A stretch of 63,534 bases of DNA, counting the filler, from Trichosphaerium sp. ATCC 40318 (Eukaryota; Protista; Tubulinea), in NCBI GenBank assembly GCA_038496445.1. It is 4 parts of 4 records of this genome, joined end to end, with 100 filler letters (N's around TTAATTAATTAA, not from the genome) between each part and the next. Parts side by side here need not be neighbours in the genome. Positions count along the whole stretch, not along the records: positions 41,619 to 61,834 come from JALMLS010000010.1; 3 more parts are not named here. One strand, 5' to 3'. Below, piece after piece: positions 1,061-56,500 of this stretch; the first letter of the stretch is position 1, and each line of letters opens with the position of its first letter. Under the pieces are notes generated by a model. The model saw nothing but the letters and a program-made list of their open reading frames with translations, had not been told where the DNA came from and did no database searches. The translations under genes and the position numbers were made by a program.

Positions 1061-3453
1061 ATGGTACAAAGAGCGTTACAATATTGTTTGAGCCTTTTCT
1101 GTCCTGCTATGTCCCGTTTTTTCACCAAGTACTTTAGGGTCGTTTTGACTACTTATGTCTTACGTCAGTACTCAAAACAAAGCATTGCATACTTCTTGAA
1201 GCTCAAAACCGAGCGGGTTTTCAAGCATGTTAAAATAAGTGAGAATTCAGATGCACACAAAATTCTTGAAGCAATGCGTATGCATCCGGAACTTCTCAAG
1301 TATTCTCTTAAGAAAACTAAGAGTGAAGACCTGGGTATTGTTTTTCATATTAACAGGAAGCTGTACGTTTTTTAGTTATGAGTTTGAACAAAGACAATCA
1401 AAAACTCCGAACTGGTGTCTTTCAGAAAACTAATTGTTTTCGTTTTTTTTCTTAGGTTGGAACAGATGATTTATGATGGAGAACCTTCTGTACCATTTCT
1501 TGTTCAAGTACTTCATAAATACCTTACGGCTGATTTGAAATACTTCTACGACCTTAAATACACAGAGGTAAGCGAGAAATTTTCTTCAAAAACACTGACT
1601 AGTTTGATTAAAGGTTGTTGATGTTCACTCAACTTTCTGGTCACAGTACAATCAAGACCTTAAAAAAAAAGTATCACAGGACTACTATTTGCCAACGGTA
1701 CAGTTACATAGCTTACTACATATATGATGACATAGATCTTAGGTGGCTTCTAGTACATTAGAGAAACCGGCTGCATTAAAATTGAATCTTCACAAGCATC
1801 AATATGATGCTATTTCTTGGATGGCGCATGGTGAAGATAACTTTCATAAGGGTAAGACGAATTTACTTTTGATTTGATTTAACGTTGTTCATTTTGATGT
1901 AGAGTTTTCGTATTGTACTCTTGCTCAATGGCCTAAACTTCGGTTGAATGCTTTCTATGACCTTGGTAAAAAACAGTTTGTTCCAGAACCAGAAAAGATG
2001 TACAAAGTCTCATTTGAAGGTACAACAAATCAACTATGTTGACAACCTCAAACAAATATTGTAGGTGGTGTTCTGGCAGCTAAAGATGCGCTTGGTACAA
2101 AAATGAAAGGTAAACAGATGCGCTGATAAATGAAACTAACTTGTGTCTACACTAGTGCTGGGTTTGATTCTTTCTAAGCCAGCACCTAAATGGGAAGATG
2201 ATTATTTCAAGCTAGATAATAAAAAGTTGGAGCCTCTTTGGAAGACAAAAGCAACTCTTATAATAACACAAAGTCATTCGTCTTGTTACTGGTTTGAAGT
2301 ATTTAATAGTCACATAAAGGAGGACTATGGACTAAAAATTGTACTTGTGACAACAGCAAAACAGTACAAGAATTACACACAAAAAGATATTTTGGATGCA
2401 GGTATGAAAAGCAAGCTTGGAAGATTGTTAGTTTTCTGATTTTATTCCAGATGTTGTGATCATATCCCACACGTTTTTGCGTAACCCAAGTTACATAAAT
2501 GTTGGTATGACAAGTGTTGCAACTTGTATTGCTACAAAGAAGCCGTTTGTAAGAATAAGAAGGATGCTCACAAATCGTCAACGTATGTCTAGAACAAGTA
2601 AACTGAGCAACATGAGGAAGGTAAGTGGGTTTAAATGAATTCAAAAAGTCATGCCTTCAAGCCATTTTATCTATCATTTTAACATTGTTGTTAAGGAAGC
2701 AAATGAACGTGAAGATGGAGGATCTTGTTTCCCTTTTGTCTTGAATAATTTTTACTGGCATCGTATCATCCTTGATGAAGGACATAACGTCCTTGAGAAA
2801 CAAGACCATTTCTACTTTGAAGAATTGTGTTCGTTTGAAGGAAGATCAAGGTGGGTTGCAAACGAAACACGTTTTCCAAACTGGTACGGTATCATTTCTA
2901 TCTGTTCTTTCTTCTACTTTCGTTTTAGGTGAACCAGACCCTATTTACTCTTCTTTTTAGGCTTACGATCAGTGGTACAATGAAATTCTTACGAGTCAAA
3001 TCTGATGATCCGAAGTTTAAAATCTATAACAGTCCAAACACACAAGAACAAGCATACTCAAAGTTCGTCTTTTTTTTTTCTACGGTTTTTTTTTTGTAAA
3101 ATCAAATGTTGTATTGACTAACTTATTACTGTAGCTATGTTATTGCTGATAAGCTATTCTCTAACCTCTATTGGTAAGAAACTACTTATTTTATACTCAA
3201 GTGTGAACTTACCAGTTAATGTTTCTGTAGGAGATGTAACACAAAACTAAGTACTAAAAACGAAATCCGTCTTGTAAATTTCAACATCAAGGAGCGCTCA
3301 ACCACTGGACGTAGAATCCTTCGTCCAAAGACTCGCCGGAGATCAATGGCAAGTAATGGAGACAAGATGATGGCAAATAATTTTGCAGCCATGAATATTA
3401 TGAAGGCCTATAGGTATACTGTTGATCGTAGTAAAAAGCACTTTGAACATTAA
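1061..3453 (+). CDS. Degenerate SNF2 (Rad5/Rad16-like) N-terminal ATPase-lobe protein, multi-exon
   Basis: Exons encode LNLHKHQYDAISWM (Q motif), GGVLAAKDALGTKM (eroded Walker A), WHRIILDEGH (Walker B) and RSRWVANETRFPN (eroded motif III). Start codon uncertain. Confidence 0.6.
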
Positions 3454-3505
3454 AACCACGTGATACGTTAAAGTCTCAAAAATAAAAAAATAAGTTGAAA
3501 GCAAA

Positions 3506-3616
3506 ATGAAAGTCCAAGTTGCTTTTCTTCTCTTCTCCTCTCTTATGGTGTTAGCTGCATATCAGTGCGCTTACCAAACACTACCGAAAATAAGAAACAA
3601 TACTGTACATCAATGA
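3506..3616 (+). pseudogene. 5' fragment (signal-peptide exon) of the secreted JAB-like family
   Basis: MKVQVAFLLFSSLMVLAAYQCAYQT closely matches MKVQAAFLLFSSFIVLSASQCAWQT at 7447, including the upstream AAAAATAAGTTGAAA; stops after 36 codons. Confidence 0.6.
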
Positions 3617-3679
3617 AAAACCAAGGCCTTAAGACAATGTCATTTCCACCTAGAGCACGCTTCCGTACTATCACTGTAG

Positions 3680-3830
3680 TTTTTCCACTGTACAAATTCC
3701 TACCTAGTACTCGGTAAAACTGCAGTATACACTTGAGATACAAATCGTTGCTCGCTGAGAAATGTTAAAACCGCCGAAATCCAGCAGCTATGTACTCTAG
3801 CGCTGGTTTTAGATGTCAATGTTGGCTGTA
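3680..3830. repeat. Dispersed non-coding repeat, copy 1 (other copy ~15280-15480, partial ~30288-30320)
   Basis: Shared blocks TTTCCACTGT..CCTAGTACT.GGTAAAAC..GTATAC.CTTGAGATACA..CGCCGAA..GCAGCTAT..GGTTTT.GAT.TCAATGTTG. Confidence 0.6.
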
Positions 3831-3981
3831 AACACTGGAAAACTTGTTTGGTGGACTCAGTATTGTGGTCATCGATGTTTTCGTTTACAGCGTCCAAGAA
3901 TCCTTTCATATGTCTTACAAGTAAAAAATTAATGAGAGGCCGTTAAGAAAACAACAAACGTAATACAAAAACGACAAATAT

Positions 3982-6867
3982 TTATTGGAGAAAACAGAAC
4001 AAACCAAGAAGAATTAACATATTGAACAGTATGTAGAGTTTTGTTGTTGTAGAACTTGATGTTACTGACACGAATGTTGGGGTTGTTGTAGGGTTTGAAG
4101 GCTGTGTTGGTATTCCAGCTGTAGGTGTTGTAGTAGTTGGCGGTAGCGTTGTTGGTATTGATGTAGTTGTTGGACTTTGTGGAACTGTCGGTGGAGGTGT
4201 ATTTGCTAAGGCTGTTGGTGATGCTGTTGAGGGAGTACTTGTAGTTGGTGCAATACTTGTAGGTGGTAGGGTTGTTGGAGTCTCTCTGGTAGGTGATTCC
4301 GTTGTCGGTGGGAGTGTGCCTGGTTGTAGCGTAGTTGGTGGCATAGTCGTTGGAGCAAGAGCTGGTGCTGCTGTTGTTGGTGGTAGCGTTGTTGGATTCG
4401 TTGTGGTGGGCGATGCTGTTGTTGGAGATAATGTTGTTGGATTCGCTGTGGTAGGCGATGCTGTTGTTGGAGGTAGAGTCGTTGGAGGCAGAGTCGTTGG
4501 AGGTAGTGTTGTTGGAGGTAGAGTAGTTGGAGGCAGTGTTGTTGGGGTCTCTGTGGTAGGCGATGCCGTTGTTGGAGGTAGAGTTGTTGGAGGTAGAGTT
4601 GTTGGAGGTAGAGTCGTTGGAGGTAGTGTTGTTGGAGGTAGTGTTGTTGGAGGCAAAGTTGTAGGTGGTGGCTGAGTAGTTGGCGGTGGAGGAGGGTTGT
4701 ATTTGAAAGCAGAGATTCCCAAACTGACAGTAACATTCTCTTCTGTTTTGATGACAGACAGTGTTGTAGCGTTGATGTGTACTAAGTTGCCATTTCTACA
4801 AGAGCCAACAAGAACATCACTTGATATTGGTGTGATACCTTTTAAGGTAATTGTAAGTTTGAGAACGTAAAAAAAAATGATTGATTGACGTACCTGCCAT
4901 TTCACAATTGGGGATTGATGCTGAAGTATTGGGCAAACATGAACCAGCCATAAAATTAGTTGCTTGAGTTACTTGGTTAGTACCAGCAATATACAGAACG
5001 TCACCGATAATTGTACCTAACACAATTTAGCAAAAAAAGCTTTTTGTAACTAATAGTTGTAGTGTACCACCAGACGCTAGTGTTGTTTGGTCGTTGCAAT
5101 GATGAGAATATTCACAGGTCTCCATATCAATTTCTAGGATGACAGGGCCTAAACTCTCACCAAAAATCCTTCCACTTTCTGCATCTACCATCAAACCAAA
5201 TGTATTAGCGACAACAGTGCAAGTCCTATCCTATTCAAGGAAGTTAATACATAAACAATTTTTCACTGATCAACAAAATGTTTGCAAAAAAGCAACGTAC
5301 GATTTCACATGTGTAAGGATCAACCGTGAATATCCTACTATTTAAATTGATGTATATGACTTTATCGATAGCACTGCTATATGCTAGCGCACTTGGAATA
5401 CTACCCAGACCTGGTGTAGAACAACCTGGTAGAAGGATTAATAAATAAGGTAGAAAACAACAGTAACTTACCACCAGCAATAACATTTGTGTTTGAAATC
5501 ATTCGATAATCAAATCCTGGTTGGTCTTGTACTGTATCTCCTCTTCCAGTGATAAATACATCTATTACACCTCCATCTGGAGCTATTGTAGGTTGTAGAG
5601 TGGGTGCTTCAGTACTAGGTGATGCAGTAGTAAAAGGAGCGATTGTTGTTGACACATCATAGAACATTGATGTGATTATACGTCCATTTGATATACTTGT
5701 GGAGTAGGCTGATATTGCTCCTGTGTTGATATTAAATTTGCTGAAGCCGAAAATAGACGATGTAACCACTTCATCATCTGAAATAAAAGCGAGTGCTAAG
5801 AAGAGTAAATCAGAAAAAAAGGAACTTAAGACATTACAAACACATACCAGCAGGGGGAAAAGGTATTGCGAGAGTGCCTGTTGTAGAAGATGCAATACAA
5901 TTTGGTGCATTAAAAGAAGGAATAACTGATATTAATCCATTAATACTACTTGCTACCAGTGTTGAATCGCTAAACACGACTATAGATTGAAAGCAATTAG
6001 TAGTGGAACATAAAAGTACAAATACGTTTAACTCTTTTGTAAAGTACGAAAATAAACGAACGAAAAAAAACGTAGCCGGCAGTTTTCCAACCTGTAGTCT
6101 TTCCAAAAAAGGAGATGAGGAATTTCAGAAAATAAAAAATATTGTTTTGCGAAATACTCGTTTTGTAACGTAGCAAATGTAATCGAGACGCACGCGCTGA
6201 TCCTGAGGCAGTTAAATTAGCTTCACAGGCAAGGGAAAAAGTGATATCAGTCGTATTGCAGGTTGAGTAGTCTATTTCGGTAAAAAACGTAGTTCCGATT
6301 TCATTTGCTGCACTACTAATGGCGTAAAGTATCTCAGTGTTTGGATCTACGCTTATTGAAGAGAACCCGAAGCTTAAATTGCATTCCTCCTATAGTTAGT
6401 TTTAATATTGTGTTTGCTTGAAACTGAGGTTAAATAGACCAAGGCTATCGCTCTCGGGTAGAATTAGAAAATAAAACACAAATGTAGGAGCGATAGCCGA
6501 CTTTGAGTATTTGAACGTTGCAATTCTCTTGAAAGACGTGCGTACTTGTATTTGACATGTATAAGGGTCCATAATAAGGAGGGTTGAGGCTATTGGGTTT
6601 TGTTGAGGTGTTGCAACAAAAAGCAAGTTTTTAGAAGGCAAGTATGTCATTGTTCTTACCCCTGGGATTGAGCATGCTACGATAATTTGTTAAAAAAATA
6701 TAAATACTTTTTTTGTGATACGTACAGTGTACAACTATGTTATCGTTTGCAATCATGCGTATTTGGATTCCACTGGGATCAGAATTTATAAAGGCGTTAG
6801 GGGTTTGTGTTGCGGCCAACCCGATAATGATGGCGACGAGAACAAATGCATGTCCACTGTAATTCAT
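3982..6867 (-). CDS. Mucin-like, probably GPI-anchored surface glycoprotein: two globular modules plus PTTLP stalk
   Basis: Signal peptide MNYSGHAFVLVAIIIGLAATQ; multiple short introns; (PPTTL)n stalk; hydrophobic C-terminus KLYILFNMLILLGLFCFLQ* with no cytosolic tail. Confidence 0.75.
4340..4700 (-). repeat. 15-bp coding tandem repeat (PPTTL/PTTAS)
   Basis: GGAGGTAGAGTTGTT-like units on the + strand. Confidence 0.9.
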
Positions 6868-7440
6868 TGCAAGTTATGCTTTGCTTGTTATGTTGGTACA
6901 ATTTTGTTTTTGGTTAGCTAAAACCGGGTCCAAAAATAGAGTGTGTTCCTAATTATTCTATTATTCAGAAAAAAATTCCACTTCCGTTTTTTTGCATTTA
7001 GTTATCATCTGATATCCTGCACAGCATCAATCATCAATTTGACAACAAACTTTCTTGGATAAAAGTGACTAGGCCTCATACGCTTATTTACGCGTAGAAT
7101 AGCGGACCTAGAGTATGTACAAGGTCGTTTGTGGAGTTTTACCAGAAAGGAGATTTTATAACTTCTTACACGAGTTGCTCCCTTAACATCAATGACAACA
7201 GCGACAAAGAGATTTCATATGAATAACAAGGTAGTGAAATGAAACAATTCCGGAAAATAAGATTCCGTCTGAGTTTGTGTTGCGTACTAACCACTATGCT
7301 ATACCAAACGTATTAACGCTCACTCTGGAGTATGGTGGAACCTGATACGACATTTAGGCCGTGGGTTCTTCAAAAGGCACGTGAAGTAAAGTACCTAAAA
7401 AGTCTTTGTTTGGTCAAAAATAAAAAAAATTAAGTTGAAA

Positions 7441-8438
7441 ATGAAAATGAAAGTTCAAGCCGCTTTTCTTCTCTTCTCCTCTTTCATCGTTTTATCTGCA
7501 TCTCAATGCGCTTGGCAAACACAACCAACAGTATGGAACACTGTTGGTAAATTCGTTCTTTACAAAATAGATCAACCAAACACGCACGTGATCCTCTGTT
7601 ACCACCTGTTCACTCTTTGTGTCTAATGCTTGTTTTTCTCCTTTTTTAAACGACTTGTTTACATTTCTGTAGTCCTACTCTTCTCGCAACACAGTTGAGT
7701 CCTCCAGCAACACCAACATCATACAATAACTGGAAGAGTTGGGTATTGAAGACTTTTTCATCTGCAGTTGACCCTCTTGACCAACGAGCACTTCTCGAAG
7801 TACGTAAACGCACCAAACGTACAAAGAAAGTAAAACACTAACTTGAAAAAAAAGAGACAACGTAAAATCTTCGCTGGTGCTGGATTGTCAACCAAAAATT
7901 GGGATGTTATGTTGGACGGAAAAGTAGGAACAATATCAAACATCACATGCCTGGAATATCTGTTGTACAACCTCCAAAATGAAAGATTTCCATTAGATAA
8001 GAATCCATCTGAGTTCGGCACATGGGTTCTTCAAAAGGCACGTGACAAAATAAAAAAGTGCCTGGAAAACTTAGCACAATTTGACTTGCGTAATGTTTAG
8101 GGAATGATTGGCGCCTTTATGTACAACTAGGACCTGATGCCAGCGTTTCTCCAACATCACAAATCACAAGTGCTGTAAGCGCAGATATCAGATCAGGATA
8201 CACTTTTGTTTCATTCCTTCACCTTCACCCTTTCTTTCCAAATTTACCAGGTGACATCGCTGGAACATGTGTGCCAAGCGATCCTGACTTGAATACATTC
8301 AAGTACTTCATGCAAAACGAGAACATGAAAAACGCATGGATCTGTAACGGTGTTTCAAGCTTCAAGTTTCCAATGACTCAATGTCTTCCTATCCGGTTCT
8401 TTGACGGGAGTAAAGAATACCACCAATGGATGTCTTGA
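7441..8438 (+). pseudogene. Secreted JAB/MPN-like metalloprotein, disrupted by stops and a frameshift
   Basis: Signal peptide; later exons give NPSEFGTWVLQK and FLHLHPFFPNLPGDIAGTCVPSDPDL (E...HxH...PSxxD). In-frame stops near 7736-7770 and a 1-nt deletion near 8101 relative to the copy at 13240. Confidence 0.5.
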
Positions 8439-8538
8439 TTGTTTCCCAGACGATCAAAACATTGTAGATCTCACAGCAAGTAACGGCCATGTACACCTAT
8501 TGTAATAAAACAAATACTCGTTGCTGGACTTTTATATC

Positions 8539-10349
8539 TTATTTCGAACCTTGAGCCATGATGTCTGCGTCTGACAGACCAAGTACCACCTTTGGGAACG
8601 TAACTTACATATGTTCAGAGTATGGCCTGACATAGTTTCAAGCTGAAATATACACACGATACTGTTTCAGGCAAGTCAAAATAATATCTAGTACTAGTAC
8701 ATTTGTGTATCTGAATCGGTATCAATCGAAAGCCCGTTTTCGTTGATAACCTTTGAGACGAAATGGTTTCAATTAAGCAACAATATCCATCCAGCTCCGA
8801 ATTCTTTTCAAGAACACATGACTGCTTTCCAATCAAAAGAGTAGCTACATTGATATTGCCCCGTATGGTGATTTTTTAATAATTATTTATTGAAATACAT
8901 GTTCCTTTTGCGATTAGAGTACTCTCGCAAGGATATCTTTTTTTGAAAAAACTAAAGTCTAAACATCTTGATTACATCAAGATAGTTACCATATTTTATG
9001 ACCTTCCTGTTGTGATAACACAAGGTGAATTTTTCACGTGTTCTCCACCTATCATAATACGTATTTCGTATTCAGAATTTTGTTCTGTAGGTGTGAAAGA
9101 AACTGAGCAATTGCCTTGTTTGTAAGGATTAACATTACTGCTTGGGTCAACTTCATTCTATCGTACCATCTTGATGATCTCTCAGTTTAACACCTTTGAG
9201 TTTATTTCCTTGGCCATCAACATCAAGACTAGCACCACCTGAGGTTAAACAAATTGTGAGCTATTGCATAGATTGTTGTGTAATTTGTTCCAAACTGTAC
9301 CATTCAATACAGAAGCTCCGTTCATATCCTTTACTTGGATAGTTATAGTTACTTGTTCATTTGCTTTTGCGTGCTTAGAATAGAAAGCTTCGGAATGTGT
9401 AGCATGTGCGTGTTTAACTGAAATCATGTCAGCAAATTGTTGTACATTTGTTCTCAATAGAAGTGACGTACTCTCGGAGCAGCTGACCTCAACATTTTGA
9501 AAATATGTATCTGTACCAACAAGCAAAGAGAATATGTGCTTTACCGGCTTTGTTGGCATAAATTCAAAAGAGTAAGAACAATCCTACACGGGAATTAGAA
9601 TATCTTATAGCAAAAAACAGTTGTTGGATAAAGCGGACGGCCGTACTCTATTATCTGAAGGTGTTATACGCATACGTGATGGTTCACTAAAAATCCAATT
9701 TATTTCATCTACTGGTAGCCTTCGAGACCTTCCCTATCAATGGTTATGATCCAGTTTGCAGAAAAAGTTGCTTTGATTTTAAACCGTTTTTTTTTGGGAT
9801 ATCTCACCGTCTCATCCTTTGACAGTACAACCCATCTTGCTTTTTGACCAACGAACATCTCAGTAGGTCCCATTAAGGACAAATGACGTTCCTTTATAGA
9901 CTTTAGAGAAACAATTGCCGTTTCTTAAAAAACCAGTAAAACCAAAAGCGTACGCCTCTAAAATCGCTGAGAGGCGATTCAATACGGTATTTTGCCATTT
10001 CTTCTTCGTCTCTGGCGCTAAGAGCTCCAGATATATCGGATAGAAGCTTAGATAGATCATTTCCTACACTGGCGCTATCACCTGTACTTTTGGGTACTAA
10101 ACGAGGCACAATAGGTGTAACAACGCGTGGAGATGCCTGTGGAGTGATACTACCACCATAAGTACTTATTTCTGCAACGAGTTGCGCTAGTTCGTTTTCT
10201 ATCATGTCGCTATCATCTTAGGCGCATGATTAGAAATAGAAAGCAAAAGTATAATAAACCGAACCAGCTTTTACAACAGGAGCAGCCTTTTCTTGCTTCT
10301 CTACGCGAGGAGATTCCAATTGTGATATTAGTGAGTCAATATCGTCCAT
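8539..10349 (-). CDS. Multi-exon protein with N-terminal paxillin-type LD-like motifs and a possible filamin/Ig-like region
   Basis: Starts MDDIDSLISQLES; later ELAQLVAEIS and DLSKLLSDIS; segment AHATHSEAFYSKHAKANEQVTITIQVKDMNG resembles a filamin-type Ig repeat. Confidence 0.5.
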
Positions 10350-41618: not shown

Positions 41619-42058
41619 TGAGTCATGTACATTTACTTAATTAGGAAGTTGACGTGTAACAATATGTGGGTAGTTTTGGATGTAAAAAAACGCGTCTAGA
41701 GGATTACAATGAAGCCAACATCTTTTCCTTTCACCATAACATAACTGAACCGGCTACGAATGAATGAAGGTTTTGTTTATTAAGTCTATGTCTACTTTTA
41801 AGACCGGTAGCTGTTTTCGAGTTTGTAGTTCGTCAACCTGGCCAGTATTCAAGGAGTGGCCATCATCTAGATTGTTGATGAAAACTTTGACAGAGAAAAG
41901 GATACGATACAAATAAAAAGTGACAAACAAAAAACAATGGTGCAACACACTTTAAAATAAAAGTAGACATTTGTTGAGGTAAAACTAGACTTTTTAAAAG
42001 ATGGATATCACAAAAGTTCCACTATTGAATTATATTAAAAGTACTTACAAGTAAATGA

Positions 42059-44462
42059 TCAAAAGGTGTGTTTATTATTTGTTAATGTTTTTTGTTGTTT
42101 TGCATTCAAAGTCCAGTTTACAGGCATCCATTGCACTGACAGCAAATCCTCATAAATGTTGTCTCCTTGTTCATCATCATAATTTATTTCCCATAATCTA
42201 TATTGTGCTGAATAACATTCTACAATACCTTTATACCAACCAATGCTTTCTACATTATTGTTAAATTATTTAAATTATATGTAGTACCTAGATCTGAATC
42301 TTCTGCAGTCCAAAAAACTGTTATTAGCTCTCCAACAATATCTAGCACATCTGTATTTGGTAAGTTTTGAACAACAGAAACACGTCTTTTTTTCTTTTTT
42401 GGAGAAAGCCATGATTTGTGACGTTTTTTTGGATGAGATATGGTTATTCGATTGGTAGTATACAAATCAGTATTGCCTACAAACTGTCATACAATAAAAT
42501 AACATATGTTCATACTAGCTAAATTGCAATATTGATATTGATAACTTTTATCATTTACCCAAACCAGAAAATCATAAGTGGGATTTGCTGGTTTTCCAAA
42601 ATTGATTTCTAAAGATTGCCAATATTGTCGTACTTCTGGTTCATGTATATATGGTAAAAACCATCTAATATTGTCAATTTTGACTTCTGTTATTGCTTTG
42701 GGTTCAATAATAGTTGGTAAAGTTGTTGGTATGTTTTTCTTAAAAACTAACTCTGCAGGCCTTTGTTTTGTCTAAAATGATTGTTAACAACAAGTATGTG
42801 TGTATATGAACATACCTCCCATGGCTCTGCTGATTGTGCAAAGTTTTTACATGCTAAATACACTTTACCATCAAGTTTTTTAAACAATTTATAAGCATGA
42901 GGCAATTTATGTCCTTTCATATGTCCAACATAATCTGTCATCCAGGTTTTTATGTCCCAAATGTTTGAAAAACTTTGAACAATTGGTTTATCTTTCATAG
43001 AATACACAGTTTGTTGAAGTTGCTTTGGCCAAAACACATCTACACTTCTTATTTTTTTTTTTAAACAACCAAAAAACTGATCTATATCAGTATGAGTGTG
43101 TTCCTAAAAAGTTATTAGCATATTTTCTTCTTTTTTCACATACTTGTAATAAAAAGTAGATATGAATTTCTTTGAATATGTTTTTTGTAATCAACCATGC
43201 TAAAGTGAATACCATCCATTGATTTTTGACTTCTCTACTACAATTATCTGCCTAATACACACTTATACTTTGTTTTTGATGAAAATAAGGTACTGTTATT
43301 GTTAATATTGGAGGATGTTGTCTATTTTGACAATGGTATTGTTCAATGCTGAATTTTAAATGCCACAATAAGGTAGATACAGAAAAATTTGCATCTTTAG
43401 AATATTGAGATTCGTAACATATAAGTAAATTCTTTAAGCGCAATCCGTGATTATGAAATCCTAAAACCATCAATATACACAAATTATATAGATAATACCC
43501 ATTGAATGTATATCAAACTTAGGTATTCTACTGAATTTTTTTGGACATCTTGCAAAATGAGGTAATTGTATTCCATCAGTTCCATCCATTGCAATGCTCA
43601 TTAATTCATCAGGAGTAGTTTTAGCAATTAGTTTTCTTTTTTGATATTCTATTCTTTCTCCTTTATGTAAACGCACATGACTTTTGTAATCATCCAAAAA
43701 CATGGTGCGTTGTTCTGTAGTAGTAGACCATTTGATCAATTGTTGTAAATACTCACAAGTATCACAATGACACAATCTACATATATTAACTCACATTTGT
43801 TATTGTCCAAGTACTTGGTTCGATATCCGAATTTGACATTTGAAAAATGACAAAGTAAAGTGTTATTGAATGTTGAAAATGATGGCACATTTTCTTCTTG
43901 ATCATCTACAAACTGTGCATATAAGCTTTCTTTAGTTTCATGATTTTTTAGTAATATCTACTTTAAGTTATTTAAATTTTTTGAATAACAACATACTTTG
44001 TCTTGATTTGGCATATAATCAGCATACAGTATATAGTTGTTAATCCAAGCAATGCATCTATTTGTTTTTTCTGCTGTTTTTATACCGATGTTACCATGAG
44101 GTGCTGGAAATTCATTACATAAAGCTAACTGGGCAGCTTTTTCTAATTTATGCTTGGTGATACCATAAATTACTTGAAAAGCACTTCGACATACTGATCT
44201 TCCTCTATAAGCTATAAATCCAATTGATATTAAATAGTATTTTGTACTTGAATTTATATTGAATATGTTTTTTCCCTGGTATTGGCACCATTCCCACCAA
44301 CAAGTTTTTTAAAAATATAGTTCTAGCATATTCATTTTGAAGTAAATAAGCTTTTCTAGCACTGGCTATATGTTGTGCAGAAATATGTTGTTTACAATTG
44401 CATTGACAAGCCAAAGATGCATATGCATTTGCAATACCAGCTTGAGTATACTTTTCATTGTC
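42059..44462 (-). CDS. Intron-split DDD transposase (Sola-like/DUF7869-type) with C-terminal Tudor-like domain
   Basis: VCRSAFQVIYGI, HGN.G, CDTC, SIAMDGTD, ADNCSREVKN, HTHTDIDQFF motifs; 5' start not resolved. Confidence 0.75.
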
Positions 44463-44488
44463 CTAGTATTTTCATTAATTTATCTGGT

Positions 44489-44720
44489 TATATGATATCC
44501 AGTTTAAAAATCTAGTTTTGTGAATATATGAAAACCACATAAGTAATTATGGTAACCAAAAACTGATTATATGATATCCAGCTTAAAAATCTAGTTTTGT
44601 GAATATATGGAAACTACATAAGTAATTATATGGTAACCAAAAACTGATTATATGATATCCAGCTTAAAAATCTAGTTTTGTGAATATATGAAAACCATAT
44701 AAGTAATTATATGGTAACCG
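44489..44720. repeat. Tandem repeat, 79-81 bp x ~2.9, inside the transposon
   Basis: TATATGATATCCAG.TTAAAAATCTAGTTTTGTGAATATATG... starts at 44489, 44568 and 44649. Confidence 0.92.
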
Positions 44721-45477
44721 GAAACAAGGTTGGCCATCAATAAAATCAGTTTTGGTAAAAAGGTTGTTTTCAATTTGAATCAAGATGATTTTCACATAAA
44801 AGCCCCAATAGCTTGTACAAACTGATCTTTTATGTTGTTTTAACTACTCAATACCTTTGATAAGATGTACATCTATAAACCAAAAGTGTAACACGCTATT
44901 TCTACACAGGCAGTCAATTCAAGTAAATTGTGCTGTATTTTCAAAACAAATACCAGAGACGGCACTGTGGACCATGGAGAGTACGTACAAAACCAATGCC
45001 GTTTTAGCTAGCGCCCACTCACTACAACGGGTTTAAATTCCACTAAAATTTAAGCGGCTGGGTAAAATACAAGGAGCGCTGTGATAACAACACCACAGGC
45101 TCTATTCCGCCGTTTTTCGCCAAATCTAATTATTTTTCGTTAATCCGTGGAGATATCACTTTAAACGCCACGACGTTGCTACAGCGCCCAAAAGCGCTCT
45201 TAAACGCTGCAATTTTAAAAAACAAAACGATTTTAGCCTGAACGATTTTTCAACACAACGACGCTCAAACAAACGCATGCTACACGGAATTTTTACGTCT
45301 AGCCTAAATTTTTTGCTCCGCTGGGCTTTTTTTTCTCAGCCAAGGCTTTTTGGCTGTACTGCAAAAAATATTTCTATTACCGTGCCTTTGATGTGTTGCT
45401 TTTGCCAAGTTGTTTATATTTGAATAGAAATTCTTGATGCTCCAAGCTCTTCCGAGTCAACAAGTGAAAGAAGCTCG

Positions 45478-46818
45478 ATGAATGGCAAGTTTATGGTAGA
45501 ATCTGCTGGTTGTATAGATTGTACAAACAAGGATGCAGTTTCATTAAAAGCACTGTTACAGTATATGAAGGAATCTGCTGTTCATAGCACTTGGTGGTTA
45601 AAAGATGTTGGTAGATTTGTGTGTGGCATCACTGCAACAGGCCAAGTACATACGTTTGTATACAAATAGGAATGTTAGCTGTTAAGGTACCTTACCATAT
45701 AATTTCTACATAGTTGTTTATTTTTTGTAGCAAATGAAAGCTAGAAAACAATTTGTTGCTGAAGCATTGGAAAGTGTTGAGTCTACAACAATTGGCCAAT
45801 TTGCCAAAAGTATGCGAGATCACTTACGTATTGGTGGTGATAAAATGAAAACATGCACAAAGGAGGAGATTAAACAATGCTATATACTAGCCAAGGTAAT
45901 ATATACTTAGATTTTAAAGGCCTTATTCACCATAGGATTATGTGTATTGTCATGCAATGTCTAGTACTAACACGCACTATTTTGGAGTTTTCAACGGTAT
46001 TGGCTACAATGACGTTTCTCGTACAGCTGTAGCAGTCGTGTTAAAAGGAGCAGATGTAACAAAAATTGGAGATAAATTGACAATTAAAAATGGTGCTACT
46101 GGTACAGTACAGTTTGTACATAACAAAAGCTCTCGTATACATGTTATGTTAAAAACTCCAATGGGGATGCAATCAATTTCAATTAGTAAAACGGTACCGC
46201 CTTCACCAACTGACCAAGGAATTAAAAGAAAGAGAAGCCAGATCGATGAAGTAAACAACTGGATTAAGGTACTACTTGCAGGTTTTGTTTATAAAATTAA
46301 AGAAATGTAGGAAAAACCATCAAAAAAACCCAAACTTCAGGTAAGTACTTTCTACTTTATGAAAAATTGGTAACCATGTATTAATAGAACGTTCTTAATA
46401 CAAAATTGGCCTCTGATGTTAGTAAGTTGTTTGACTTACTTACAAATTTGACTACAAGTCACGGAGTAATTGTCAGTGAGCTAAAGACAGTTTCTTCTTC
46501 ATTATCACAAGTGATAAACAATTATGAAGCAGTAACTACATTGTTGAAAAAAGAAAATGCTTGTTTACAAAACAACTTTGCTGACTTGGCCGATGAATTA
46601 GCTGTCATTAAAAAAATGATCAAGGTATGGTTTTTTTATAACAACCACTTTAAAGTACATTGTAGAAAATACCAAATAAGGATAATTCTGTTATTGAAAT
46701 AGACTTAAATGAAGATCAATATGATCAATCAGATGATGATGAACTAAGTGAAGATGAACTAAATAACTCTGATTATTTAAAACAGTTGGCAACAAATTTT
46801 TTTGATGAAAACCAATAA
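45478..46818 (+). CDS. Second transposon-borne gene of unknown function (NLS, coiled coil, acidic tail)
   Basis: Several GT-AG-bounded open exons; KRKRS, heptad segment LLKKENACLQNNFADLADELAVIKKMI, tail EDQYDQSDDDELSEDE. Confidence 0.55.
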
Positions 46819-46934
46819 ATAATACTTTCTGCATTTGTACTGGTTTTTTGCTTATTGTAAATTTTTTATTGTATACACCACTTTTAAGGTGAAAAAGTAC
46901 ATACAAATGACTGTGTAATACCACCTTTTTATTG

Positions 46935-47519
46935 GTATATACCACTTTTATGGTATGCTTTAAGAAGGTTATTAAGGAGCTTTTTGGTAGTGGGTGAGGT
47001 TGAACAATCACAGACATCATACATTAAACAGTGTGTAGGGATCTTAGTATATCATAAAATCTAACCAAACAAATCTCATTCGAACCAAAGGATTTGATTC
47101 CAATACCACCATTAAGGAACCTATATTACAGGTATTATACAGACGTTCGTGGGTACCAGACAAAGTTTTATTTTATTGTTGGTTGATATACATTAACTAG
47201 CCTACATAGGCCTTAGTAATTGATGGATTAAGGTGAAACTACTTTCATTAGGTGCACAGCATGTTTTTATAGTAGTTACAGCAAGATCATGGAGATGAAC
47301 AAATTTTCCAAACACCCATAGTAATGTAACTGTAGTGGACATTGTTCAAAACTTGTAACTCCCAAACTGTGTATTAAATAAAGTATTTTCTGGAATTAAT
47401 ATACCAAGGTTTCTACACACTGTTTAATGTGTGTCATCTATGATTATTCAGTGTGAAAACCCACTACAAAAAGTCTTCTTAATGACTTTCTTGAAGCATA
47501 CCATAAAAGTGGTATATAC
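46935..47519. repeat. ~105-bp imperfect inverted repeat pair (46935-47038 / 47413-47519)
   Basis: GTATATACCACTTTTATGGTATGCTT...CATTAAACAGTGTGTAG and its reverse complement. Confidence 0.85.
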
Positions 47520-50500
47520 TTTGGCAATAAATATAAAAAGAGTTGCAAGTATGAGATAGTAAAGAAAAAGATATTACATAGATGTTAAAAGCTGCACACA
47601 AGAAAAAATGAAATGGTACAAGCAAACATTATGTAGTAAATCAACATGCTTATCACATTCAAAATGTATGGTTTTATTTTTACAAATGTCTACTTTTATT
47701 TTAAAAGGTGTTGTGCAATTTACATATTTGTTTAAAATTACTACTGAAATTTCTGTGTATCACGTGCATGAAAAAGTACTCTTTTGATTTCTGCTGCACA
47801 GTTTTCAGGAGTAGCTCTAGGGTACATACTAGTCCTTGTAGAGAAGTAGTCGAGCGACTGAAACATGAGTACTGAATTCTTGATAGCACAACAAGTACAA
47901 TCTTCGCTGTATCCCGTACGAAAATAAGAACGAAACAAATACAAGCCCTCAACCTCAGGAAAGCACGGTGCCTTTATCCAGCTGATATTCACGTGAGGTA
48001 ACTACCACGATACAAAATAACGACAACACCTTTTGTCTACCTACATTGCTACAGAGATCTTTTTGCAGCTGAAAGTTTGGTTTCGGGTTTAAGCCATTTC
48101 CGTAGGCTACTTAACACTGTTTCTTTCATGTTTATAAAGACAGGATTAAACTAAGCGATATAGCGAATACGGAGATATTGTTTCACGTGATAAAACCGGT
48201 TTTTCCAAATTAATAGTATCCATCAAAACTTCGTTTTAAAACTGTTATGACAACGTTACACATACCGTTGAGTACGTTGTCCGGGTGTTTCCGGATCCTT
48301 TGACTGTCCTTGAAAAGTTTTATGACACTCGTTAATAATTTACCTTTTAATCATGAAGTGGTATAGCTGTAGTGTTGTTTTTGTACATAGTTTTTGGGGA
48401 CAAACATTTTCGCATTATCTGCAAAAAACGTTTTAGGCCAATCACGTTTTCCCTTTAAAATTAATAATTTAAGGATATACACTTGCGTATGGACATGTTC
48501 TTATGTTTTTTAAAGGGATTTCAATAGTGTTAATCCCAAAACGAAACAAACACTTTTTTTTTCTTGGTTTAAACAACAGTTCTCTTTATTTTGCTGCTTT
48601 ATATACGTTACATAGAAGCGCCGAAACAGAGTACACAAACACAGTGAATCAAAAACTAAAATAATAGAGTCCTAAAAGATTAATAAGCACGACAACAATG
48701 TAAGGAATACGAACCCTTCCTCTATTATCTACTTTTTAATAATGGGGATTTATAGACAGAAGCCGATTTTAGCTGCCTTGGTTATTCATAGTGATTGTAG
48801 TGATAACCAAGGCGCTATATGACGGTCATAGGCTTCTTTTGTAAGAGGCGAGCTACTAAACATGAGATTAGAGGTTTCTTTAGGGACCGCTGTCGTTGTA
48901 TGCATACCTTATCCGTACGTTAGACCAGTTTGATTCGCCTGGTTGTCTTCAAGAGCACTTTTCTTTTTTGCTAATGTTTTTGTTGTAAAACAAAGGAAAA
49001 AGTGTAGCGTCGAGAGTGAGGTAAGTCGCCTGTAAAGATTAGGTTGTTTATTTTAGGTCATTAAGTATACGTAGTGAGATTAATTGTTTCTTTTTTGATC
49101 GCTTGGTGGCGTACATTTTTTGGGCGAATGCTAGCAAAGGGTACGGTTTTGCAAGTTGAAAAAAAAAAGATCGGAATGGAACAAATATTAAAAACGGTTC
49201 GACATCACGTGATGGTAAGTTTCAGCGAGCTAAAGTAAAAAAAAAACTTATGCTCACTTCGAATAGTTGAAAAAAATATAATGATGTATCGTGGGCGTGC
49301 AAATGGCAACGAGCTCACGGGCGAAAACGTCTTGGGAAAAGTGCTACCTTTGCTGCGTATGGTAAAAAAAACAGTGTAAATGGCGTCAACTAAAATAACG
49401 AACTAGGTTTTTAAGATATCACGTGTGCGATCTTTTTGTCGTTATACAATACACACTCAAGTTGGGGTTTTGCTATCAAATATTCAATGGGTACGAGCGA
49501 TACCATGCGTGTTTTTGAACGAAAAAAATAAAAAAAATACGGTTTTGTTGACAACTTTTACTGCCAACTAGTAATAGTGTTTTGTGGGTTTTTTGGTTTG
49601 TTTAAAAATTAGGGACTCAAAAACTAGAATTGGAAGGCACTCGTAGCCTTGTTATTACGTTTAACAAGTGGTTTCAATAATTAAACAAATTTTCATACGT
49701 CAAAGCTTTTAGTTTGTTTTATTGCAAGGACGAAAAGAAGAGCTCGAGAAGAAAAAAAAAAATTTACAAAAAGATCTTGTTGAAAAAAAACTTTTCCTCT
49801 TTCGAACCCTATCCTCTTTTTTTTCCTTTTTTATCACGAACGTCAAGCCGCTTTTATCCTTCTTAATCACAAAGAATTTGAATCCATTTGGCTACATTTT
49901 AAGCCATGAAACCATCACTTAAGCATGCGTAAGTTGTCACCAAACAAAACGTTTTGGTTTTTGTGGTCTTTTTTATGGAAGTTTGAAACTAACCTGAAAG
50001 CCAGCGTCTGCTTTAATAAACATTGCGATCCGTACGTCCTTTGTCAAGCTTCACTAGGGTCATGTTTAGACTTTTCTCGTTACATAAAATTTAAAAAAAT
50101 CACGTGATAAAAAAGATACGCTGTAGTGGTATTAAAAAAAAACAATGTCGGTGATCTAAGGGAAACTGGTACGAAAAAAAAACCTGAAAAAATATGATTT
50201 AGGCTTACTTTTCTTTTGATTAAACTCGTTGTAGGTAAATGGCATACGATGGAGGCTCCCTAGCACACTAGTAGTAAAATTTTTGTGGCGCTAAACAAAA
50301 GAAATCATAACGTTCTCCAAATCAACATGAGACACATGTGTCTTCATGCTTGACTCCATTGATGGCAAATATTTTATATCGGCGGAAGCGTCATTATTGC
50401 AGACTATGTCATTTTAACTTATCATGACAGGTAGCTGAGCGCTAGCGCACACTTGTTGTAGCAAAAAAAAGTGGACTTTTTCAGGCAAGTATTTGTGTGA

Positions 50501-53515: not shown

Positions 53516-56500
53516 TTATACCCACAATCGTATTGTTGAATCAGCGCCAGCACTAAATAGCCATGGTTGTCCAGGGTAAAAAGCGATGTCTAAAATTCCT
53601 ACGAGAAAAAACCACGTTAGCCATGTCACCGTACCCGTAAGTAAATACGTACCATATCCGTCTACGCGTTGGTGACCGCGTAATATTTTCAATGGAACAA
53701 TCAAAGCATTCTTCGTTAAATCATCGTACACCATTCCATGGTATACGTGAATCTGTCCATCGTCTGCACAGGAAGCGAAAAGAGGATACATTGGGTGAAA
53801 TACAACTTTACGCAATGAGTCTTTATGATATCTAGAAACAAAAGCAATCAGCCATTCCATCCACAAAAACGGAGAAAAAAAGAAAGTGAAATGTGTCGCA
53901 TCGAGTTGTGAGCAAATTTGAAAAAAAAAACGTACTTTATTCTCTTCCAAGGAGCTTCGGACGATAGATCGTGATCATACCAGTGTAAACGCTTCTCGTA
54001 GGTACCAATGATACAATTATCTCCTGTTTTGTTTAGTTAGCGAACCACGAGTTATATAAGAAATCTTCAAACCACTAGCACGTACCCTTTGGATGAACAT
54101 CAATTGACGAAATGAATTCAAAATTACCAGTAATTTTGTATTTCAGATTACGTGTTTTTAAGTCATAAACACGACAATATTGCTTAGAGCATAGATACAA
54201 CCAAGGCTTGAATGGATGAAATTTTACAGCAGTAATGTAACCTACAAAAAGAAGAAAATGTCAATAGATTGCCTTAACAACAGGCCACACTGTGTATCGC
54301 CTGGAAGTCCCCGAAATAACAAACGTACCCTTATTTTTTTTAAATGGTGCTTGTGTTTGTCTCTTTGTTATACGATGAAACAATACGGCTGTAGCAGTAG
54401 CTAATCGGACGCGTAAGATAGCGAATACGTAAGCTAAAGATTAACATACCTTGAGGAGCTACAGTTGCCATGTAGTCACCGCGGGAGTGCCAAGTCATAT
54501 GTTTTACGCTTGCTTTCTATACATTGCATTAGTTAGAGCCTAAAACGCCAATAGAGTATCGCTGTACGTACAACGTAGGCAAAGGTGATCTTAGAAGCGA
54601 TTTTATGTTCCCTCTCCTCTTCTGTAGGGTAATGCCATTGTACCTTTGATAGCATCTTATCTTGTATAATAGTTTCTCTATCTTCACCAAATAGAGCTTT
54701 TGTGTAGGCCGTTTGTTCTTCTGAACCAATATCTGGGACAACAAAGTACACACATTTATCACTACCAACGTATCGTCAAAAACCAAGCGAGGCAGTAGAG
54801 TAAAAAATTGTTCAGAAAAAAAATAAGCAAGAAAAGAAACAAAAGACGTCAACAAAAACAATCACTTACGTAACAACACAGAAACAACAGTAGTCAGGAT
54901 TTGGATTCCAAGATACTTGATGTATAATAGAGTCAAATTGCCATTTGTTTTGACAACGACCTGTTTGTACTTCCCAAAGACGAACAGTTTTATCGTCAGA
55001 ACCTATAAAACAAATATGTCAAAAAAAAAAAAAAAAATGATTTGTTTTTGTTTTAGAAACTAACCTGAGAGCATCCATTGTCCACTTGGATAAACGCTAA
55101 TAGATCGAACACCACCTTCATGACCAATATAACGTATACGTTCTTTTTCTGGGAAAGGTCTGAGTTCTTCTGGTTTTGGCATAGGAGGAATATCATCCCT
55201 GTTTTTTCGTTTTGTTTTCTAAACAAAACACGTGTTAATTACGGTCTAGAAACTTCTTGGTTTTTTCAAAGAATGGCTTCACAATGAAGAATGTGAGAAA
55301 TAATTACCTTTGGTTTAGGTAGACGTCTACACATGTATAGATCAAGGCATCTATCCATACGCTCTTTGAAAAAGTGCTGGTATGCCGGAACATCAAGGAG
55401 TTTGCCGTATGATTTAGGCTTCCAGTATTGTTTACGTAGTTCTTTTGGTGTTTTATCATAATTATTCTCTTCTCTTTCATCCCATAGATATTCTTTAGGT
55501 GGATTGTATGACTCTTCATTCTCTAATAAAGGAATTTAGAAAAAAAACCAAAAAAATTCTGAAGTTCAAAGAACACAAGGTTGGTCAACGTCGAACCCAC
55601 TCCAAGTAAATCCCTTTTGTACTGAAACAGAATGCAAAGGGTATTTACGCTTTCGTAGGGAAAAAGAACAGCGACAAATGAAGATTTGGTGAAACAAAAG
55701 AAAACAAAACGATTAAAATTAAACGCACGTGGTGGACGCTCTTTTGGCGCCAGTAATCTGTTAAGAGGATCTTTAGTATCCTCCTCATCTCCCCACATAT
55801 CATAAAACTGTTGAGAAATAAGAGGATCTTCAAGCATGCCATCATCTGTCTTTGGTTTCAACTTTTCAGGATCAAATTTAATAAACCCTTTGCGCATCTT
55901 GACCATCAGTTCTTGTATCTAAACAAAAGTCTTAATATCTCATCGGTTTACTGAATAAGTAGTACCTTCTGTTTCTCCCATTTCGAAGGCAAGAAGCTTG
56001 ATTTTGTAGGTGGTCGGTTAGTTACAGCATGTGTATCATCTTTATGTTCTGTAAACTCAACAAACCACTAATAATACAGTCAAAAACAGAACTAAACAAA
56101 AAAAAAAAGTTCTACGCACATTCTCTGACGCATATCGTGCAGGTTCCTCTCCCTTACGTATTTGTTGTATAATTTTAAGATCTCTTGCGGATAGGACAAT
56201 CTTCTTACCAGTTTTCTCATCGAAAACAACACGCCTGAAACAAGCTGTTAGACATCTATTTTCAGAAAAAAAAAAGAAAGAAATAGAAAATGCGAGGATA
56301 TGTCATGTACCAAGATGTCGGTGTTTCGTGTCTTGTAACCCATTTATCAATTTCATCATACTGTTTAGGTTTTTTGACTGGATTACCATCAAGATCATAA
56401 CCAAGATGCTCGTAATCATCATACCACTCAAGTGGTACATTACCGATTGTAGTGAGAGTACGCTAAAGGCATTAAAATAAAACAAACGCAAAAAACAAAG

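Follow-up and report, generated by a model that had tools for sequence, protein, structure and literature searches.

A structurally complete, probably Sola-like DNA transposon with a DUF7869 transposase gene and a divergent orphan gene in Trichosphaerium sp. ATCC 40318

What occupies positions 41940-47716 of a stretch of genomic DNA from the tubulinean protist Trichosphaerium sp. ATCC 40318 (assembly GCA_038496445.1), and to which group of mobile elements, if any, does it belong? The stretch, referred to here as the window, is 63,534 nucleotides long and consists of four parts of four records joined end to end by filler; the interval lies in the 20-kb piece that comes from JALMLS010000010.1 (41,619 to 61,834), and all positions count along the window. 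A previous inspection of the sequence by itself (hereafter the sequence-only reading) had described the interval as a complete two-gene, Sola-like DNA transposon with terminal inverted repeats (TIRs) and a target site duplication (TSD). Sola elements have DDD (three-aspartate) transposases and 4-bp TSDs. In its structure the sequence is that of a complete class II element: it has TIRs, a TSD, a gene for a DDD-type RNase H-like transposase and a further gene. We consider it highly probable that a cut-and-paste DNA transposon (class II, TIR) inserted itself here, one whose transposase is of the DUF7869 family and which we read as Sola-like, with Sola1 as the nearest group.

The ends of the element are sharply defined. 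A script check of the borders placed the element proper, from TIR to TIR, at 41944-47712 (5769 bp), with GTGC directly outside it at 41940-41943 on the left and an identical GTGC at 47713-47716 on the right, so that TIRs at both borders and a perfect TSD beyond them, as expected of a class II TIR transposon, are present at this one insertion. The left TIR (41944-41974, plus strand) is 31 nt long, starts with 5'-AACAC and reads AACACACTTTAAAATAAAAGTAGACATTTGT, while the right TIR (47682-47712, minus strand, also 31 nt) reads AACACCTTTTAAAATAAAAGTAGACATTTGT as its reverse complement, giving two mismatches over 31 nt (29/31 identical). In their context the left border runs ..CAATG GTGC AACACACTTTAAAATAAAAGTAGACATTTGT.. 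and the right border ..ACAAATGTCTACTTTTATTTTAAAAGGTGTT GTGC AATTT.., and the reconstructed empty site is ..CAATGGTGCAATTTAC... The repeat finder stretched the TIR pair to 63 nt at 79%, and a 24-nt core of the TIR, TTTAAAATAAAAGTAGACATTTGT, is exact at both ends and occurs twice in the window, once per strand, compared with a chance expectation of 0 over 100 shuffles. According to our own arithmetic, a 4/4 match of the flanks has a chance of ~0.6% at the local base composition. The span given by the sequence-only reading is therefore correct and takes in both TSD copies; its 31-bp TIRs at 29/31 were recovered by direct comparison, by the repeat finder and by the uniqueness of the core, and its GTGC duplication on both sides by the script check (4/4).

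Gene 1, the DUF7869 (Sola-like) transposase gene, lies on the minus strand at 42059-44462 and comprises 10 exons with 668 codons plus a TGA stop (42061-42059). Exons 1-5 are located at <=44462-44248, 44204-43997, 43957-43815, 43776-43499 and 43460-43294, and exons 6-10 at 43251-43144, 43103-42816, 42771-42559, 42483-42288 and 42249-42062; the nine introns between them are all GT-AG and 38-75 nt long, and the minus-strand reading together with a local frame check revealed no internal stop. Pfam and homology searches were run exon by exon, and the joined frames of gene 1 and gene 2 (described below) were used for the local frame and stop count. Two exons matched Pfam DUF7869 (PF25273) on successive segments of the profile and above its gathering score of 26 bits, namely exon 43251-43144 (36.1 bits, E 6.4e-9, profile positions 65-99) and exon 43103-42816 (41.4 bits, E 1.5e-10, profile positions 127-191). 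An exhaustive HMMER search of a library of 1.8 billion representatives, with exon 43103-42816 as query, retrieved 73 homologues at E<=1e-3, all of them DUF7869 or uncharacterised proteins. Full-length homologues came from amphioxus (Branchiostoma), the brittle star Amphiura, the sea anemone Exaiptasia, Mytilus mussels and the amoeba Thecamoeba, and their tblastn matches in the window follow the exons collinearly, beginning in the N-terminal region and extending across the catalytic core. A scan of the full-length relatives with NCBIfam and, permissively, with Pfam (E<=5) found no family besides DUF7869, unnamed clusters were the sole Atlas matches of the amphioxus homologue (P0009) once DUF7869 was excluded, and no mention of DUF7869 was found in the literature searched.

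Alignment with the family located three acidic motifs in the product of gene 1. Exon 4 (43499-43776, minus strand) encodes a CxxC motif and the predicted first catalytic Asp (..SIAMDGTDGIQLP..) and aligns with residues 251-343 of P0009; exon 6 (43144-43251, minus strand) encodes the predicted second catalytic Asp, in ADNCSREVKN, and aligns with P0009 396-431 (MDNCWRECKN); and exon 7 (42816-43103, minus strand) encodes the third motif, E-HTHTDIDQFF. The family consensus IIDGMDQ..LP corresponds to IAMDGTD..LP in the window, LQ.DNC.RE.KN to ADNCSREVKN, and VGHTHEDIDQ.F to QEHTHTDIDQFF, with H2, H4 and D8 of the third motif invariant across the family alignment. The residue before the His-Thr-His (HTH) of this motif is near-invariant, being Gly in 67/69 homologue motifs, Arg in 2/69 and Glu in 0/69, and the window has Glu in its place.

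In order to place these motifs on a fold, a structure was predicted (AlphaFold) for P0009, with the family and the window exons as alignment rows; the model (pLDDT, the predicted local distance difference test, 82.6; pTM, the predicted template modelling score, 0.71) is of this homologue and not of the window's own spliced protein. Residues ~292-471 are modelled as beta1-beta2-beta3-alpha-beta4-alpha-beta5-alpha, in which D314 closes beta-1, D397 comes right after beta-4, and E436, D437 and D439 open the next helix. The top Foldseek rows, all with weak E-values, were RNase H-like transposases and integrases throughout (IstA, TnsB, MuA, the foamy-virus integrase core and Mos1), and VIA-align superposed the model on retroviral integrase cores at Z 9.0-9.7 (125-140 residues, root-mean-square deviation 2.6-2.9 A) and on the catalytic domains of Mos1 and Metnase at Z 9.2-9.6. 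The RNase H-like DDD fold, whose absence would have spoken against the sequence-only reading, is therefore present in the family representative, and as modelled here the DUF7869 family is RNase H-like.

Beyond the catalytic core, exons 9-10 (42062-42483, minus strand) encode a basic stretch, KKKKRR, followed by VGELITVFW..GWYKGIVECY..WEINYDDE, which would form a possible Tudor/chromo-like barrel; a PTM_DIR17_Tudor Pfam match to these exons has an E of 0.04, below threshold. A corresponding C-terminal block, FW.[GA].I....[IL].[IL].WY, appears in the alignment of homologues P0005, P0025, P0042, P0047, P0051 and P0063, and it hints at chromatin-directed targeting in the DUF7869 family. One of these proteins, P0005 (MHB1800017.1, 643 aa), was deposited under a metagenome-assembled genome of a Vulcanimicrobiaceae bacterium, on a 2.7-kb contig, and this bacterial assignment is most likely due to eukaryotic contamination of the bin.

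Gene 2 is read divergently from gene 1, on the plus strand at 45478-46818, from an ATG at 45478 to a TAA at 46816-46818. Its six exons (45478-45645, 45731-45895, 45936-46268, 46311-46340, 46388-46624 and 46666-46815) flank five introns, all GT-AG and 40-85 nt long, and encode an orphan protein of 361 aa; since 361 codons stay open where stops make up 6.6% of the codons in the surrounding DNA, we take the gene to be real and intact. Both coding claims of the sequence-only reading, a multi-intron transposase and a divergent second gene, are thus borne out by these exon structures. By eye, the protein has two N-terminal cysteines, a beta-rich 111-aa exon and a KRKR motif; its 79-aa exon gave weak coiled-coil-type Pfam matches, and 16 of the last 50 residues are D or E. 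None of its exons matched a Pfam family, with neither Myb/SANT nor Fanzor/TnpB recognised, no match was found in the ESM Atlas or, by tblastn, among 80 DUF7869 loci, and exon 3, modelled by AlphaFold from its sequence alone, gave no usable structure (pLDDT 40). A word-index protein search with exon 3 likewise returned no match, within a length window that omits full-length relatives of ~360 aa, so the orphan status is provisional, given that exon-sized queries miss full-length relatives in such a search. Given the KRKR motif, the coiled coil and the acidic tail, we would guess at an accessory factor that is nuclear or associates with DNA; gene 2 could also be a captured passenger gene.

Comparable elements were sought among 80 metagenome loci encoding relatives, which were compared all against all and scanned for flanking TIRs and TSDs. 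The sole convincing TIR case was L061 (contig Ga0209713_10004769, 8773 bp), an 8.7-kb GC-rich element whose 32-nt TIRs (25-56 and 8706-8737, 91% identical) enclose an intronless 646-aa DUF7869 ORF (open reading frame; 2798-4738, E 2e-39). Its TIR, AACAACATAACTTGAAAAAGTAGACA, starts with AACA and has AAGTAGACA 17 nt in, which is the same layout as that of AACACACTTTAAAATAAAAGTAGACA in the window. Two further ORFs of L061 encode 406 aa (162-1382), with a C-terminal HW...D...Q..GKSCG that by eye is Ulp1/C48 cysteine protease-like and no Pfam match, and 785 aa (6228-8585), with a KAEKAE coiled coil and an RS-rich tail; neither resembled gene 2 significantly in BLASTP (best E 0.014 over 35 residues). 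In the near-identical trio L070/L073/L076, no clean terminus was found.

Taken together with what is known of DDE/DDD transposases, these features suggest how the element would move. The product of gene 1 would possess an RNase H-like core with one acidic residue each, an Asp, from ..MDGTD.., ADNC and HTHTDIDQ, and it would bind the 31-nt TIRs and excise the element; insertion would proceed by a 4-bp staggered cut, the repair of which would leave the GTGC duplication. A common region of ~1 kb would drive the divergent transcription of genes 1 and 2. What we infer here is catalysis, membership of Sola, what gene 2 does and whether this copy can still move; judged from its sequence, the copy may or may not be autonomous.

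Several observations weigh against the reading of the interval as an inserted Sola-like transposon with a working transposase. The copy is a single one, with no second copy or look-alike found within the 20-kb piece (n=1), the TSD length of 4 bp comes from this single insertion, and the flanks of L061 lack a TSD under either parse (GCGC vs CAGG). The closest library protein is just 40% identical to the query exon 43103-42816, and the likeness to Sola consists of the order and spacing of motifs as compared by eye. The GTGC target, again at a single site, does not fit the AWWT target called a hallmark of Sola1 (PMC3845634), nor is it one of the AT-rich tetranucleotides targeted by Sola2 (PMC3627910). 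The borders also admit an imperfect 8-bp parse, TGGTGCAA (41938-41945) vs TTGTGCAA (47711-47718), at 7/8. Within gene 1, the first recognisable exon (from 44462) opens after a stop at 44465-44463 and reaches the conserved Cys motif without an in-frame ATG; the nearest ATG (44458) is in the +1 frame, and an enumeration of ATG..GT segments that splice in frame found no convincing upstream start exon. Finally, Gly is replaced by Glu directly before the HTH, and a miniature inverted-repeat transposable element (MITE)-like element is nested in the copy at 46935-47519.

Since Glu replaces a residue that is Gly in 67/69 homologues and a MITE-like element is nested, the copy is possibly inactive. The alternative that survives best is the same element as a dead copy, complete in structure and with a non-functional transposase, which at best would be mobilised in trans. 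In addition to the missing start codon, the Glu before HTH..D (unique among the 69 homologue motifs) and the nested element, the two TIR mismatches would agree with it. On the other hand, gene 1 keeps 668 and gene 2 keeps 361 open codons, and all 14 introns have canonical splice sites, which would be unexpected in a long-dead copy, the start of gene 1 could sit in an unrecognised 5' exon, and the nested element spares both coding regions. We regard a dead copy as a serious possibility, which nonetheless falls somewhat short of being the probable state of this insertion.

The question of which superfamily the element belongs to is separate from that of its activity. The Sola superfamily of eukaryotic DNA transposons (Sola1, Sola2 and Sola3) was reportedly introduced by Bao, Jurka and Kapitonov in 2009. 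The Repbase criterion for a superfamily is PSI-BLAST convergence, whereas our comparison was made by eye, against the cores printed in the supplements of PMC3985635 and PMC3627910 and without a computed alignment score. For Sola1-1_AP (Majorek et al. 2014, PMC3985635), these supplements give the first Asp in ..VAVFDLEKVLTTP.. (FDLEK..P), helix 1 as ..GSNEIGTCLL.., the second Asp in ..FYSDNCGGQNRN.. (SDNCGGQNRN) and the third motif as ..FLERGHTQS; for Sola2-1_HM (PMC3985635), the first Asp in DFAEN, the second in TDGCAGQYKN and the third motif as SHG; and for Sola3-1_HM (PMC3985635), the first Asp in KDYCQKVLP and the second in SDNASSYHGN. Dictyostelid Sola2 transposases, from the Fanzor paper (PMC3627910), have VLMDFKENI, WSDGAKHFKS and YHGKSDVDRHF or YHGKSECDQHF, with a C..C motif upstream. 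The corresponding cores of the window are MDGTD..LP, DANFSVSTLL, ADNCSREVKN and EHTHTDIDQFF, and the window and its family follow the pattern hhhD-x7-P; [DS]-[AS]-N-x5-LL; D-N-C-x4-K-N; [G]-H-T-H-x-D-x-D-Q-x-F, with CxxC upstream. Counted by eye, [KR]N falls at +7/+8 past the second Asp in Sola1, Sola2 and the window, the G/S-H motif of the window comes at +35, compared with +34 in both Sola1 and Sola2, and the first and second Asp are 77 residues apart in Sola1-1_AP vs 86 in the window.

By eye, this likeness appears to exceed by far that of generic D-D-D transposases and to be closest to Sola1. The Sola-like call of the sequence-only reading is therefore supported by the order and spacing of the motifs, the RNase H-like fold of DUF7869 and the 4-bp TSD, with the by-eye comparison, the GTGC target and the single copy as reservations, and on these motifs we judge membership of the Sola superfamily to be probable. 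The competing view is that DUF7869 elements form a separate, unnamed superfamily and that the likeness is generic among RNase H-like transposases. The lack of a computed alignment to Sola speaks for it, as do the status of DUF7869 in Pfam, where it is kept as a domain of unknown function with no transposase family linked at E<=5, and the GTGC target and AAC termini, unlike the Sola1 and Sola2 descriptions (PMC3845634, PMC3627910). However, besides the three acidic residues the two have in common an upstream CxxC, SN....LL in helix 1, D-[NG]-C-x4-[KR]-N, [GS]-H-x-x-x-x-D-x-x-F, a near-identical spacing and the 4-bp TSD, which leaves a separate superfamily unlikely, if still worth keeping in mind. 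A more speculative proposal, to which we give little credence at present, is that DUF7869 elements are a distinct, undescribed branch of Sola or a sister to it, which would have 5'-AACA..17 nt..AAGTAGACA termini conserved between very distant eukaryotes, as in the window and the GC-rich, protist-like contig of L061, a target that is not AT-rich, lineage-specific accessory genes like gene 2 needed for transposition or targeting, and a Tudor/chromo-like barrel steering integration to marked chromatin.

The 8-bp parse of the borders gives rise to a further alternative, according to which the element makes 8-bp TSDs, has TIRs starting with CAC, and belongs with or behaves like one of the superfamilies that make such duplications (hAT, P, Zisupton or Novosib type) and not Sola. 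This parse adds four positions to the duplication, three of which agree, somewhat above chance, so that the whole stands at 7/8 vs a perfect 4-bp parse. In the homologous element L061, AACAAC at both ends abuts unrelated flanks, which makes the terminal AA part of the TIR, and because the TIRs of L061 and the window share one layout, AAC is favoured as the true terminus and the 4-bp parse over one that starts at CAC. The features expected of the 8-bp classes (hAT, P, Zisupton) were not found either: besides the 7/8 parse, the transposase and its full-length relatives matched no hAT, P-element or KDZ Pfam family, DUF7869 standing alone at E<=5, and the catalytic motifs fit the Sola layout. An 8-bp element is accordingly quite improbable, and we retain the Sola-like reading with its 4-bp TSD.

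The sequence-only reading had also supported the junction by an in-frame fusion of the two flanking ORFs. With 41944-47716 (the element and one TSD) deleted, the minus strand does stay open for 148 codons, with ..KQICKLH|HCFLF.. across the junction, and this part of the claim stands. The support that it was taken to lend does not stand to the same degree: since 11% of sampled positions in nearby host DNA already lie inside open frames of >=140 codons, neither half of the fused ORF has a Pfam match, and both TSD parses take out the same 5773 bases, the fused ORF is weak evidence, and for the last of these reasons it is unable to tell a 4-bp from an 8-bp duplication. The frame agrees with a clean excision footprint without proving one. 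The weakest alternative, a host gene pair or domesticated transposase flanked by a chance inverted repeat, could appeal to the single copy in the 20-kb piece and to two intact genes with introns as short as those of the neighbouring host gene, yet it is very improbable in view of the 31-nt inverted repeat, exact over its 24-nt core, that lies precisely at the borders and is followed by a perfect 4-bp direct repeat, of a TIR layout common to another DUF7869 element (L061), and of the continuous open frame restored when the interval is removed.

The remaining features of the element lie outside its coding regions. An 81-bp tandem repeat is present in 2.9 copies at 44484-44719 (Tandem Repeats Finder score 423, 94% matches), in the intergenic region and immediately upstream of the point where the transposase gene becomes recognisable; a motif resembling ATGATATCCAG is found both in its units and near the left end of the element (subterminal, 42001-42011), and no enrichment of this motif was found beyond the 81-bp repeat. 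The intergenic segment 44940-45420, upstream of the gene 2 ATG, has a GC content of ~37% vs ~30% and may be a shared promoter region. The nested MITE-like element (46935-47519, ~585 bp) lies downstream of the gene 2 stop and has inverted arms of ~115 nt, corresponding to inverted repeats I1 and I3, with TA repeats at its borders; the arms contain segments that are 89% and 81% complementary, and an extra 20-nt copy of its terminus is found at 46871-46890. From its sequence it looks like a Tc1/mariner-type (Stowaway-like) MITE. No Rfam families or tRNAs were found in the element or its flanks.

The host piece is AT-rich (30-40% GC). By eye, minus-strand ORFs around 53516-55906 resemble a BOP1/Erb1-type WD40 ribosome-biogenesis gene in their WD40 and N-terminal sequences (..FHPMYPLFASCADDGQIHVYHG.., ..GADSTIRLWV); they are broken by short in-frame introns, and host and element are alike in having very short introns. 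Among the metagenome loci, moss-associated contigs (Ga01162xx / Ga02092xx / Ga02096xx; L024, L033, L036, L038, L043, L045, L053, L058, L062-L068, L071 and L077-L080) from one set of samples carry mutually 65-90% identical DUF7869 genes on many long contigs, with palindromic TGGTGGCCACCA-like motifs recurring around these genes, and judging by their sequences they apparently represent a large, diverged, multi-copy DUF7869 family of one eukaryote.

The locus shows a Pfam domain of unknown function in the setting of a mobile element, with a DUF7869 protein of Sola-like DDD layout lying between TIRs flanked by a TSD. Therefore, the DUF7869 entries listed as "uncharacterized protein" in animal genomes are very probably transposases or their remnants. 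With two multi-exon genes and 14 canonical introns the copy is unusually intact, and it offers a starting point for studying the ends, target and activity of the family, with gene 2 as a candidate accessory factor.

How, then, does the element compare with known systems? With Sola it would have in common a TIR-bounded cut-and-paste organisation, a 4-bp TSD and a predicted three-Asp RNase H-like transposase, as well as the order and spacing of the motifs (D..P, SN....LL, D-N-C-x4-[KR]-N, G-H-T); the H-x-x-x-D-x-D-x-x-F third motif of Sola2 is also found in the window, and the host range is alike, DUF7869 relatives being present in cnidarians, amphioxus, echinoderms, molluscs and amoebozoans. 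It differs in its termini, which are AAC compared with GGACCG in an insect Sola1 family (PMC3845634), in its third motif (GHTQ in Sola1 vs GHTH-E-D-x-D in the DUF7869 family), and in its second, divergent gene and possible C-terminal Tudor-like barrel. A second ORF beside the transposase, as in the window, is known from PIF/Harbinger (transposase plus a Myb-like ORF) and CACTA elements, although gene 2 lacks Myb/SANT; similarly, Sola2 is known to carry a passenger Fanzor1 in Sola2-Fanzor chimeras (PMC3627910), whereas gene 2 has no Fanzor/TnpB domain.

The DUF7869 database proteins (amphioxus XP_035680730.1, P0009; Amphiura XP_072050017.1, P0025; Exaiptasia KXJ07141.1, P0016) are collinear with gene 1 over the CxxC, the three catalytic motifs and the downstream block. 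They are <=40% identical to it, belong to a family with a near-invariant Gly where gene 1 has Glu, and are annotated as uncharacterised without an element context, whereas the window protein lies inside an element bounded by TIRs and a TSD. L061 resembles the window in its TIR layout, its DUF7869 transposase and its additional long ORFs, and differs in being intronless and GC-rich, in having no readable TSD, and in extra ORFs without significant similarity to gene 2. The element is thus best read as a divergent, Sola-like (Sola1-like) member with an extra orphan gene, and otherwise as an ordinary transposon insertion.

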